Shown: piece after piece, positions 47,983 through 53,305 of the stretch | Layout of the letters: the number at the start of each line of letters is the position of its first letter | Position numbering within the stretch: the first letter of the stretch is position 1 | Sequence record: PV764938.1 | Length of the DNA: 64,000 nt | Direction: 5' to 3' (one strand) | The notes under the pieces: generated by a model | Databases searched by the model: none | What the model was told of the DNA's origin: nothing | The model's input: the letters and a program-made list of their open reading frames with translations, nothing else | Translations under genes and position numbers: made by a program

Positions 47983-48058
47983 CGCGGTTTAGCTCAGTTG
48001 GTAGAGCAGCGATCTCTAAAATCGTTTGTCACGGGTTCGAGCCCCGTAACCGCGGCCA
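47983..48058 (+). tRNA. Amber-suppressor tRNA, anticodon CUA (tRNA-Trp-like scaffold)
   Basis: 76-nt cloverleaf: acceptor CGCGGTT/AACCGCG, D arm GCTC/GAGC, anticodon stem GCGAT/ATCGT with loop CT-CTA-AA (CTA at 48016-48018), T arm ACGGG-TTCGAGC-CCCGT, G73, encoded CCA. Confidence 0.93.
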
Positions 48059-50556: not shown

Positions 50557-50975
50557 TGAAATTTCAAGTAGAAGATCGCGGCACTATCCTGAGCATCAAT
50601 CCAACGGTGCCTCACTGCATTATCAGTATCAGCGACACTCGTGGGGATCGCGCCGATCCCGCAGTCAATGATCTGACCCGCGATGTATTGTTCTTGAACT
50701 TTCACGACACAAATGAGCCGAAGCCCGGAATGGATCTGTTCACGGTTCGGCATGCGATCGACGTCCTCAATTTTTACGAGCGTTACAAGGGCGAAGTCGG
50801 CTTGTTCGTGGCCCACTGTAACGCTGGTATGTGCAGGAGTCCCGCAGTAATCGCGGCCCTGCAGAAGATTCATACGGGCAACGATGACAACTGGTTCCGA
50901 ACCAAGACACCAAACTCCCTTGTCTACCGCACAATCTTGGGAGAAGCATACGAGCGCGGACTCCTTACCGTATGA
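50556..50975 (+). CDS. Protein-tyrosine/dual-specificity phosphatase-like protein
   Basis: IISIS, LNFHD, HCNAGMCRS (CX5R). Confidence 0.8.
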   Translation: MKFQVEDRGTILSINPTVPHCIISISDTRGDRADPAVNDLTRDVLFLNFHDTNEPKPGMDLFTVRHAIDVLNFYERYKGEVGLFVAHCNAGMCRSPAVIAALQKIHTGNDDNWFRTKTPNSLVYRTILGEAYERGLLTV

Positions 50976-50979
50976 GCTT

Positions 50980-51276
50980 ATGATTTCGGATTCCGAATGG
51001 GATCCATTTTTGGATAAGTTCTTCCCGCATCGCGTGGATTTGTACTTGAAGCATCTCGAAGGCTACAACGTGGTCAGCGCGATCTTCGAAGCACATGAAG
51101 CATTTGGTCCTGCACGTTTCCGTACCCGTTTCTTAACGACTCTTCACGTCTACGTATTGGATACGCTTGAGGAGAAATCCTATTACAGCCGGACTGGGAC
51201 TTGGTTCATGGTCCACAACGAATTTTATTTTGCGAACCACAACGATGCGGTTCTTTTCAAGTTGAGACACGGATGA
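50980..51276 (+). CDS. Hypothetical protein (AxxFKL-terminal family)
   Basis: FYFANHNDAVLFKLRHG. Confidence 0.6.
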   Translation: MISDSEWDPFLDKFFPHRVDLYLKHLEGYNVVSAIFEAHEAFGPARFRTRFLTTLHVYVLDTLEEKSYYSRTGTWFMVHNEFYFANHNDAVLFKLRHG

Positions 51277-51584
51277 ACGAAAAAGTCAAATACATGGTCA
51301 AGCGGCTTCCCATTAAGCTCCGCCTCAACAATACGTTGATGAAAAACAAGGGCCATCCCCAGGAGTTCCTCACATTTGAAAACCTGCTGTGGAACATCTA
51401 CGGACCACCGATGATCAAGCTGGAAGTCTCTCGGTTCTCGCCCTCCGGCATGTACTGGAAAAAGAATCCCGATGGTATTTGGGCACGAGTCCGGAACGAG
51501 TTCTACTTCAAAGATGCTCGGACTGCTGCGCTTGCACGGCTTCACATGCCGGCGGATTTTGAAATTACCAAAAGATTAATTTGA
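51273..51584 (+). CDS. Hypothetical protein (AxxFKL-terminal family)
   Basis: FYFKDARTAALARL; ATGA coupling. Confidence 0.6.
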   Translation: MNEKVKYMVKRLPIKLRLNNTLMKNKGHPQEFLTFENLLWNIYGPPMIKLEVSRFSPSGMYWKKNPDGIWARVRNEFYFKDARTAALARLHMPADFEITKRLI

Positions 51585-51615
51585 CAAGATAGGTACAATT
51601 GTATTAAATAGTGGC

Positions 51616-51714
51616 ATGAATAAGAAATACACCCACTTGTAGCTTCATCGGTCTCGTTCTCCGCCATTTGTGCTTGAGTTAATCGCACGAATTTCAAATG
51701 GAGAACGACAATGA
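51616..51714 (+). promoter_or_regulatory. Putative leader ORF (MNKKYTHL-amber-...ERQ-opal) overlapping an RBS-occluding hairpin
   Basis: TTGACA 51581, TTAAAT/TAAATA 51604-51610, ATG 51616, TAG 51640-51642, TGA 51712-51714 overlapping ATG 51711; stem TCGTTCTC(CGC)CATTTG / CAAATGGAGAACGA. Confidence 0.4.
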
Positions 51715-52025
51715 CCAATATCAATTCAAACATAGACCTAGACGACGATCTCGATGACGACGAGGATGACTACCTATTCGACGATGATGAATGGGAAGAC
51801 TCTGCATTTCCAGCGAGAATCGCAACCGAATATCCAGGTTGGCACCAAATGAAGATCACCCGTTTCACCGGCGGAACGCTGGCGGAGATCAAAGAATGGT
51901 GCGACGAGAATATTACTCGTGGACTCTGGAAACAAGTAGGTTGGAATTCTGGTTGCTCTTATAGCGTAGGTATAGTAGTAGAACACGCTAGAGACGCCAT
52001 GCTATTCAAACTGCGCTGGAGCTAA
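51711..52025 (+). CDS. Hypothetical protein with an acidic N-terminus (AxxFKL-terminal family)
   Basis: GGAG RBS; EIKEWCDEN..RG.W, DAMLFKLRWS. Confidence 0.7.
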   Translation: MTNINSNIDLDDDLDDDEDDYLFDDDEWEDSAFPARIATEYPGWHQMKITRFTGGTLAEIKEWCDENITRGLWKQVGWNSGCSYSVGIVVEHARDAMLFKLRWS

Positions 52026-52027
52026 AT

Positions 52028-52423
52028 GTGACTGACGAGTATTTGGCAAAACCAATCGTGCCACAGGCCAAAGAAAAGGAACTCAACTTGAAGTTCCGAA
52101 AGGGTGTCCTGTATACGGCGGGTGAGGTCATTACTTGCATTCACAACTATTTGCCGTATCGGGTTCCCCTCAAGGAACTGGGGATCAGCGAAGAACGGAC
52201 ACAGCATGATGATCCGAATGGTCCTCCCGGCAATGCTCGGTTCGAACGGACTGAACGCCTGAGGGAGTTCCTCACCAACATTACGCCGGATCTGATGACT
52301 GACGTCGGAAAGGGTCACAAGCGTTACGAACACAACAAAGCCGGCTCTTGGGCAATCATCGTCGGCTGGGTCTATCTGAGGGATCCGAAACTGATTGCAA
52401 TTTTAAAGCTGGCTTTCGGTTGA
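52028..52423 (+). CDS. Hypothetical protein (AxxFKL-terminal family)
   Basis: GTG start; YLRDPKLIAILKLAFG. Confidence 0.6.
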   Translation: MTDEYLAKPIVPQAKEKELNLKFRKGVLYTAGEVITCIHNYLPYRVPLKELGISEERTQHDDPNGPPGNARFERTERLREFLTNITPDLMTDVGKGHKRYEHNKAGSWAIIVGWVYLRDPKLIAILKLAFG

Positions 52424-52490
52424 CAAATAAACCAGCATAGCTTAAATAGAGAACACTGGTCATGGTGATCAGCTTTTAGGAGAAAACGAA

Positions 52491-52985
52491 ATGAAGTATT
52501 AGGTTGAAGAAAAGCTGCGTGTTCGGGCCTACAACGGTCTGAACGAGACTTCCCTCCCTGCGGCTACGCCCGCATATTTCGGCGACGACGAGTCGTTTGA
52601 AGAAGCCAGCAATAAGCTTCGCATTTACAGCATCATTCGGGGCGATCTCGAAATGACCGCTGGTAAGCTTGCCTCCCAGGCATGCCACGCTGCGAAGAAC
52701 TGCGCTATCATCGCCCAGCAGTACGAGCCTCAGTTGCTCGAGACTTATCAGGGCCCTGATTTCATCGGTACTCAAATCATCCTCAAGGCGAAGAATGAAG
52801 CCGCAATCCTGAAGGCCTACGAAGCCGCTAAGGAAGCAAACCTCATCACCTCGCTCATTGTTGATGAAAAGCATGTCATGCTCCCGCACTTCGACGGCAA
52901 CCCCATCATTACCGCTCTCGGTATTGGTCCTTGCACTCGTGAACAGGCGCATCACATCACCAAGCGGTTTGAGGCTGTACGATGA
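52491..52985 (+). CDS. pth2: Peptidyl-tRNA hydrolase type 2 with an in-frame amber codon at position 4 (readthrough gene or pseudogene)
   Basis: AGGAG-N8-ATG AAG TAT TAG GTT..., in frame with IYSIIRGDLEMTAGKLASQACHA, IILKA, LIVDE, TALGIGP; the track ORF at 52653 starts inside the conserved first motif. Confidence 0.8.
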
Positions 52986-53305
52986 ACCCGCGCTGGAAGA
53001 AAGCAATGGACGCCTATAAAGCGGTCATTTGCGCACCAAAAGAACAAGGCGAAGATGGTTGGTCTCCGCCTCCGACGTCGGAACAATGGCGCGACAAAAA
53101 GTGGAGCAGAGAGCTCCGCAAGATGTGGCCCGAATATACGAGCATCCGACTCGAAGATATCCGATTCTATTCGGAGAAGCAAAAGTGGTGCAAAGAAAAC
53201 GCCCAGTTCTTCTGGGTAGCTGGTAATCAGCAGATGTGGTATTTTTCCGATCGGAACTCCGCGCTGCTTTTCAAATTGTCCTTTGGAGGGAATGTAGAAC
53301 TATGA
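52982..53305 (+). CDS. Hypothetical protein (AxxFKL-terminal family)
   Basis: QKWCKEN, WYFSDRNSALLFKLSFGG. Confidence 0.65.
   Translation: MNPRWKKAMDAYKAVICAPKEQGEDGWSPPPTSEQWRDKKWSRELRKMWPEYTSIRLEDIRFYSEKQKWCKENAQFFWVAGNQQMWYFSDRNSALLFKLSFGGNVEL

Follow-up and report, generated by a model that had tools for sequence, protein, structure and literature searches.

The 126-nt intergenic gap between genes 264 (51273–51584) and 265 (51711–52025) of the Sinorhizobium jumbo phage Phosso was analysed within a 64,000-nucleotide stretch of record PV764938.1 (the window), in which coordinates are those of the Phosso record (469,473 bp) minus 124,000. Sequence comparison with related loci suggests that this gap probably holds a leader that acts as a suppression-gated arrest-peptide translational attenuator of gene 265. 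A short open reading frame (ORF) is interrupted by an in-frame amber codon, beyond which the same frame encodes a putative ribosome-arrest motif of the form R-x-P-P on the RNA strand that pairs with the Shine–Dalgarno (SD) sequence of the gene. This motif on the anti-SD arm is the conserved effector of the leader; it had been overlooked in the initial annotation, in which the promoter, the interrupted ORF and the hairpin were described and a suppression-dependent attenuator working by reinitiation was proposed. Both flanking genes are annotated 'hypothetical protein'. The features of the leader and of the gene that it precedes are as follows.

51581–51586, + strand: −35 hexamer TTGACA of a sigma-70-type promoter, read from the sequence.
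51604–51609, + strand: −10 hexamer TTAAAT, 17 nt after the −35 hexamer and 6 nt before the leader ATG.
51616–51639, + strand: first part of the leader ORF, MNKKYTHL, with the ATG at 51616 not preceded by an SD.
51640–51642, + strand: in-frame amber codon TAG, the proposed gate, read from the sequence.
51643–51714, + strand: read-through part LHRSRSPPFVLELIARISNGERQ, 23 open codons to the TGA at 51712–51714, which overlaps the ATG at 51711.
51655–51666, + strand: codons CGT TCT CCG CCA for Arg-Ser-Pro-Pro, a putative RAPP-like arrest core.
51654–51662, + strand: anti-SD arm TCGTTCTCC, outer stem, pairing with GGAGAACGA.
51667–51691, + strand: inner stem-loop, with TTTGTGC at 51667–51673 paired with GCACGAA at 51685–51691.
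51700–51708, + strand: SD arm GGAGAACGA, containing the GGAG of gene 265.
51711–52025, + strand: gene 265, the putatively regulated gene (104 amino acids), with an acidic N-terminus and a conserved VGWxSGCSYSVG...DAMLFKLRW.

In the proposed mechanism the host RNA polymerase would start at the sigma-70-type promoter, and the 5′ end of the transcript would fall on the leader AUG or beside it. As long as this mRNA is unoccupied, the SD of gene 265 is predicted to be sequestered by the upstream anti-SD arm, in a computed and conserved fold. Ribosomes would translate MNKKYTHL and arrive at the UAG; if release factor 1 (RF1) acts there they would leave, the hairpin would remain shut and gene 265 would be off. 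If the UAG is decoded by the phage tRNA with anticodon CUA (tRNA-CUA), ribosomes would proceed by five further codons to Arg-Ser-Pro-Pro, a RAPP-type sequence at which peptide-bond formation would be blocked once the first Pro codon occupies the P site; the predicted stall has CCG (51661–51663) there and CCA (51664–51666) in the A site. The stalled ribosome would cover the anti-SD arm and the inner stem and free the SD ∼40 nt downstream, where other ribosomes could start gene 265. It is most likely a stalled ribosome, rather than a passing one, that holds the hairpin open. With such a gate, gene 265 would be made only once a working suppressor tRNA has accumulated. Comparison supports translation across the UAG, the motif and its place on the anti-SD arm, the hairpin with its covariation and the co-occurrence with tRNA-CUA; the transcription start, the arrest and its release, the tRNA that reads the UAG together with its amino acid, and the effect on gene 265 are inferred.

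Relatives of the leader were obtained as syntenic loci in uncultured large phages by searches with the neighbouring and downstream proteins; Agrobacterium phage Atu_ph07 was the only other isolate among the related loci. A single-protein search of viral contigs with gene 265 returned nothing, whereas alignment-based searches did recover relatives. The same module was found upstream of a gene-265 homologue in 13 distinct sequences, the gene-265 proteins being 39–79% identical to that of Phosso. Its elements follow one another in the order TTGACn, 17 nt, −10, 6–7 nt, ATG without an SD, an ORF of 5–8 codons, TAG, 2–6 codons and R-x-P-P. The TTGAC(n) −35 element stands at the equivalent position in 12 of 13 (TTGCCC occurs in one and TTGATT in one), the −10 element takes the forms TTAAAT, TATAAG and TAAATA, and the spacing of 6–7 nt from −10 to ATG and the absence of an SD hold in all relatives. 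The promoter (TTGACA at 51581, TTAAAT at 51604) and the unleadered ATG at 51616 that had been read from Phosso alone are present, and their spacing is kept in the 13 relatives; an unleadered transcript is predicted, starting at or next to A51616.

The mini-ORF has the consensus M-K-K-x-L-T-H-H in the relatives and is closed by TAG in all 13 distinct leaders, never by TAA or TGA and never replaced by a sense codon; TAG terminates just 62 of 544 long ORFs (11%) in the Phosso genome. In L092 the TAG is shifted two codons earlier relative to the His-His pair and is still kept. Never replaced, and retained in L092 despite this shift, the UAG is to be regarded as a selected feature. A scan for the module (ATG, at most 12 codons, a stop codon, at most 14 codons, R[AGSDP]PP) gave one match in the Phosso genome, at the leader, and two stray matches besides the gene-265 leaders in 737 kb of related loci. 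The arrangement described initially for Phosso, MNKKYTHL-TAG at 51640 followed by 23 open codons to a TGA (51712–51714) overlapping the ATG at 51711, was confirmed in the sequence. A 23-codon open frame alone has an estimated chance of ∼0.3, and the open frame with the ATGA overlap is not significant in a single sequence, so the weight rests on conservation of the whole module in the 13 distinct sequences.

Patterns of substitution carry a coding signature on both sides of the TAG. In the clade with the most divergence, 2, 2 and 10 columns are variable at codon positions 1, 2 and 3, respectively, over 16 codons. Among the pairwise codon differences within the seven codons that follow the TAG, 37 are synonymous and 8 non-synonymous when read in frame, compared with 9:43 and 2:51 in the shifted frames; for the eight codons before the TAG the counts are 13:5 in frame and 4:17 and 0:22 in the other frames. 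Protein-level selection in the relatives covers the first 7–9 codons of the read-through part. Since the frame beyond the UAG is under selection, ribosomes must pass the UAG, and since the signature flanks it on either side, a single ribosome must translate the halves in succession; no ATG, GTG or TTG occurs between the TAG and the R-x-P-P motif in the leaders examined. On this comparative evidence, translation continues past the UAG in the same frame.

The R-x-P-P motif is present in 13 of 13 leaders, as RAPP in seven, RSPP in three (including Phosso), RGPP in two and RDPP in one (L092), and its Arg is encoded across the leaders by all six codons (CGT, CGC, CGA, CGG, AGA and AGG). At a RAPP-like motif, (R/Q/H)-(A/G/D)-(P/G/S)-(P/G), ribosomes stall when the third residue occupies the P site (PMC10987492). 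In ApdA and ApdP, saturation mutagenesis found the Arg to be irreplaceable, Gly to be at least as active as Ala, and Ser, Asp and Pro to be partly active (PMC12992588). RAPP, RGPP, RSPP and RDPP all fit the RAPP-like core, and every x residue of the leaders lies within the published permissive set. RxPP has also been selected as an arrest motif from random libraries, where seven upstream residues matter, and an arrest peptide has been described as comprising an arrest module and, N-terminal to it, a regulator module of ∼7 residues (PMC10951233). A module of this kind would explain the conserved peptide before the UAG, and MNKKYTHL is likely to be the N-terminal 'regulator' part of an arrest peptide. 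The motif is preceded by eight residues, the UAG position and 2–6 residues, with no hydrophobic segment; lacking an export signal, the leader peptide would be an arrest-like module and not a 'monitoring substrate'. The residue inserted at the UAG falls three to five positions before the essential Arg, in the arrest-tuning stretch, so that the circuit could distinguish read-through by the phage tRNA from accidental read-through. ApdP is native to Sinorhizobium medicae, which belongs to the genus of the Phosso host (PMC7897499).

The hairpin that had been proposed to bury the GGAG of gene 265 was recovered by RNAfold (−31.1 kcal/mol, z = −2.58; 2 of 200 shuffles fold equally well), and its arms covary between clades. 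The SD and anti-SD arms of the clades read GGAGAACGA/TCGTTCTCC, TGTGAGTG/CACTCACA and CCAAGGAGAG/CTCTCTTTGG, and those of Atu_ph07 read TATGGAG/CTCCATA. Covariation was assessed by a permutation of cis versus trans duplexes and not by a per-pair count, because MAFFT alignments of the leaders lose the SD/anti-SD register between clades. Duplexes with the own (cis) arm had a mean energy of −14.9 versus −9.5 kcal/mol, the best of 720 permutations of six clade representatives. One pair of the inner stem is U·G in Phosso, C–G in L090 and U–A in L003. The RSPP codons (51655–51666) overlie the anti-SD arm (51654–51662) in Phosso, and the first Pro codon lies 45–56 nt upstream of the gene ATG in all relatives. 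The modelled probability that the SD region of Phosso is unpaired was 0.30 in the free RNA, stayed at 0.30 when a ribosome occupied the TAG and rose to 0.64 when one occupied RSP/P. Across the leaders, a modelled footprint at RxP/P increased SD accessibility in 11 of 13, and one at the TAG shifted it by at most 0.07 in all 13.

An intrinsic transcription terminator or attenuator was considered and rejected: the hairpin is followed by CAATGACC, which contains no U-tract, and is therefore not an intrinsic terminator, and a terminator scan found nothing at the leader site. In Atu_ph07 (L002:3014–3085) the promoter and the mini-ORF are missing and a two-tier SD-hiding hairpin is kept (z = −2.9). 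There the frame of the upstream gene, beyond its TGA, reads I-V-F-K-P-P up to a TAG, and the Pro-Pro codons (CCU CCA) fall on the anti-SD arm CTCCATA. This single case, in which the Pro-Pro is preceded by Lys and not by Arg, may correspond to the amber leader with opal suppression as its input.

The suggestion that ribosomes melt the hairpin and reinitiate by classic ATGA coupling did not hold across the relatives. The initial annotation had proposed looking in related phages for both the TAG and the ATGA overlap; the former is universal among the leaders, whereas the read-through frame ends at +1 relative to the gene-265 ATG (ATGA) in only 4 of 13 lineages (Phosso, L003, L143 and L095). In other lineages it ends at +5, −6, −17, −19, −21, −23 or −31, and in L090 and L092 it continues in frame into gene 265. 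In these two loci (L090:2812–3231 and L092:2845–3231) ribosomes escaping arrest would yield an N-terminally extended gene-265 protein. With so variable a frame end, termination–reinitiation coupling cannot be the common mechanism, although ATGA coupling may add to the effect in Phosso. The suppression-dependent attenuator as first proposed thus loses its reinitiation step and keeps, by comparison only, the promoter with its unleadered start, the covarying SD hairpin, the selected read-through frame and the co-occurring tRNA-CUA (9 of 9 genomes, detailed below).

The same observations bear on read-through coupling without arrest, the version first proposed, in which passing ribosomes would unwind the hairpin, end at the ATGA and restart on gene 265, the R-x-P-P being a by-product of the anti-SD sequence. 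It would suit the four lineages with an ATGA end, every read-through frame traverses the anti-SD arm, and CCNCC is required anyway to pair with GGAG-like SDs. It nevertheless appears unlikely, given an unconserved frame end (−31 to +5, or fused in frame with the gene) and x residues that all fall within the permissive set. The Arg two codons before the Pro-Pro, moreover, is held invariant through six different codons and lies outside the core pairing in most clades, and the peptide before the TAG is under protein-level selection, which a mere unwinding device would not need.

Phosso carries 62 tRNA genes, two of which have the anticodon CUA.

47983–48058, + strand: phage amber-suppressor tRNA (anticodon CUA), presumably the input that acts in trans, with a perfect acceptor stem and G73.
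446731–446806 of the record (L088:6731–6806), outside the window: second tRNA-CUA, with two U·U acceptor-stem mismatches and A73.

The two copies may be charged differently, or one of them may be impaired. A tRNA-CUA was found in nine of nine testable module-bearing genomes (Phosso, G001, G002, G003, G004, G006, G007, L098 and L101), a count that leaves out L090, L092 and L095 (short contigs) and the 34%-complete G005; the gene often lies 1.5–3.6 kb upstream of the leader. Both the TAG leader and a tRNA-CUA are lacking in Atu_ph07, which carries a tRNA-UCA (also stated in PMC6102473), and the authors of its genome could only point to many UGA stops as possible suppressor targets (PMC6102473).

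A second in-frame amber codon was found in pth2 (window 52491–52985), 0.8 kb downstream of the leader. The gene reads AGGAG-N7-ATG (52491), M-K-Y, TAG (52500) and 50 sense codons without ATG, GTG or TTG into the PTH2 domain; it starts upstream of the annotated start at 52653, and the Pfam match begins ten residues before the annotated Met. In 13 loci pth2 has the same organization of SD and ATG, 3–7 codons, an in-frame stop, 32–50 codons without a start codon and then the PTH2 domain, the stop being TAG in 12 loci and TGA in Atu_ph07. The pattern TTGACA-N15–18-TNAAAT has two copies in the window, compared with 0.19 expected, and four in the whole 469-kb genome; the second copy in the window, at 52420, stands before pth2, in agreement with the earlier remark that a promoter of the same type lies near pth2, within 1 kb. 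The pth2 promoter is TTGACA-N16-TTAAATAG (52420–52447), and the unusual −10 octamer TTAAATAG, which is also that of the leader promoter (51604–51611), has only these two copies in the window. Amber-interrupted pth2 would depend on the same suppressor-tRNA input as the leader. It can be suggested, tentatively, that the suppressor tRNA is the trans-acting regulator of a small 'amber regulon', acting on pth2 directly (UAG at codon 4) and on gene 265 via the arrest peptide.

Genome scans yielded only pth2 and the leader as in-frame TAG targets. Two further candidates with an SD, ATG, short frame, TAG and long ORF, at record positions 161315 (−) and 189477 (+), were discarded because they are antisense to annotated genes. 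Genome-wide recoding was also rejected, since TAG is an ordinary stop and TAG-split ORFs are not in excess. A phage tRNA-CUA and in-frame TAG codons likewise occur in gut phages, crAss-like ones among them, that use code 15, in which TAG is read as Gln (PMC9523058, PMC10879173); unlike the Phosso genome, which is not recoded, they have many recoded ORFs (phAss-1 has TAG in 41 ORFs; PMC10607447).

A different version of the arrest attenuator would have the UAG passed at a low rate by near-cognate tRNAs of the host, with tRNA-CUA serving other targets such as pth2; the UAG would then throttle the ribosomes that reach a strong arrest site, or report RF1 activity. UAG is read by RF1 only, so that a fixed UAG would suit an RF1 sensor. 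RAPP and RGPP arrests are reported to be robust and not relieved by elongation factor P (PMC12992588), and a throttle would limit their cost. The co-occurrence of the tRNA is, furthermore, a correlation only. This version is nonetheless judged quite improbable, because every testable module-bearing genome has a tRNA-CUA, often within a few kilobases of the leader, and because in Atu_ph07 the suppressor (UCA) and the pth2 stop (TGA) have changed together and the TAG leader is absent.

That the UAG is a true terminator, with an eight-codon mini-ORF and an RNA element (a protein or small-RNA site, an RNase III site or an RNA thermometer) controlling the SD hairpin, is very improbable: the block CACTTGTAGCTTCATCGGTCTCGTTCTCCGCCATT is identical in Phosso and L003, SD-hiding hairpins are common without leader peptides and the Atu_ph07 hairpin persists without a mini-ORF, but three-base periodicity and synonymous changes, including CGN↔AGR switches of Arg codons, are found after the TAG in the TAG frame only, the hairpin has no U-tract and so is not an intrinsic terminator, and no Rfam match was obtained at 51400–52800 (E-value mode) beyond a chance snoRNA (E = 3.6).

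Several points weigh against the suppression-gated arrest attenuator. Phosso itself has RSPP and L092 has RDPP, with Ser and Asp at a place where they support no more than intermediate arrest in ApdA and ApdP. A nascent chain of only 15–17 residues, without a signal peptide, would have formed by the predicted stall, whereas characterized RAPP peptides have 100–140 residues and are released by export. The Pro-Pro is partly dictated by the anti-SD sequence CCNCC, so that independent evidence for the motif comes from the Arg and the x residue only. The thermodynamic opening of the SD is modest, and there is none in L095 and L152. Acceptor stem and discriminator base vary among the tRNA-CUA copies. 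Finally, a tRNA-CUA was not found in G005, which is 34% complete.

The genes around the leader include many for translation or tRNA repair (an RNA ligase, aminoacyl-tRNA-synthetase-like genes, the tRNA-CUA, pth2 and a metallophosphatase). Gene 265 has no match in Pfam or PHROG. Its AlphaFold2 model, calculated from ten sequences, is an alpha/beta fold of medium confidence (predicted local distance difference test score 67.7), for which a Foldseek search of the PDB gave nothing at E ≤ 0.001. A similar '...DA.LFKLRW/H/F'-like C-terminus recurs in the consecutive small genes 263, 264, 265, 266 and 268 (window 50920–53305); a profile comparison with hhalign related gene 268 weakly to the gene-265 family (E = 0.0014) and gave no match for gene 264 (E = 0.52). 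More distant gene-265-like genes in two IMG/VR contigs, G010 and G011 (L153:1–241 and L156:about 2040–2200), have ATG-NNN-TTG-TAG upstream, followed by a long open frame without RxPP that ends at ATGA in L153 and is in frame with the gene in L156. In G010 a pair of adjacent tRNA-CUA genes also lies ∼1 kb downstream of its gene-265-like gene. These loci may represent a different kind of amber gate on the gene-265 family.

Short upstream frames in which a stop or a stall reports the state of translation and sets downstream expression are familiar from prfB (release factor 2) autoregulation and from erm/cat attenuation. prfB works by a +1 frameshift at UGA, and erm and cat depend on an antibiotic; a suppressor tRNA takes part in none of them.

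The closest likeness of the leader is to ApdA, ApdP, the RQH family and SecM (RAGP), with which it shares a small upstream ORF carrying an (R)-(A/G/S/D)-P-P core. In SecM–secA the SD of the downstream gene lies hidden in a stem-loop that a stalled ribosome opens, as is proposed for the leader (PMC7897499, PMC10987492, PMC10951233, PMC12992588); RQH-family arrest peptides sit upstream of secA, secDF and yidC. The leader differs from all of these in its short peptide (15–17 residues to the stall, and not 100–170), which has no signal or membrane segment by whose export the arrest could be released. It differs further in its predicted unleadered mRNA, in being phage-encoded, in a downstream gene that is not a secretion component and in the in-frame UAG that must be passed before the motif. 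Genes outside export are also regulated by CruR of Bordetella pertussis and by RAPP/RGPP upstream ORFs of Streptomyces (as cited in PMC12992588 and PMC10951233). These systems are bacterial, most of their products have localization signals, CruR is copper-responsive and no internal stop codon is reported for them in the texts consulted. The logic of the leader matches that of a tna leader peptide into which amber codons were engineered (Liu, Qi, Yanofsky and Arkin 2011, as cited in PMC6412442). That switch is synthetic, is transcriptional (masking of the rut site) and uses an unnatural amino acid, whereas the leader is natural, would be translational and is conserved across a phage clade. No phage arrest peptide or natural suppression-gated leader was found in the literature searched, which does not disprove that one exists.

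If the proposed mechanism is correct, the leader would be the first natural gene switch found to sense stop-codon suppression, and its product the first RAPP arrest peptide from a phage. It would extend RAPP arrest peptides to phages and to very short peptides that are unleadered and carry no export signal, and the input to the arrest would be a new one, the decoding of a stop codon and not a pulling force or a small molecule. The leader would be a natural counterpart of the engineered amber-in-leader switches, a part of ∼100 nt that turns amber suppression into translational activation. To the question of why large phages with an otherwise standard code carry suppressor tRNAs, the leader contributes a second conserved and specific target besides pth2 and a concrete, testable mechanism.

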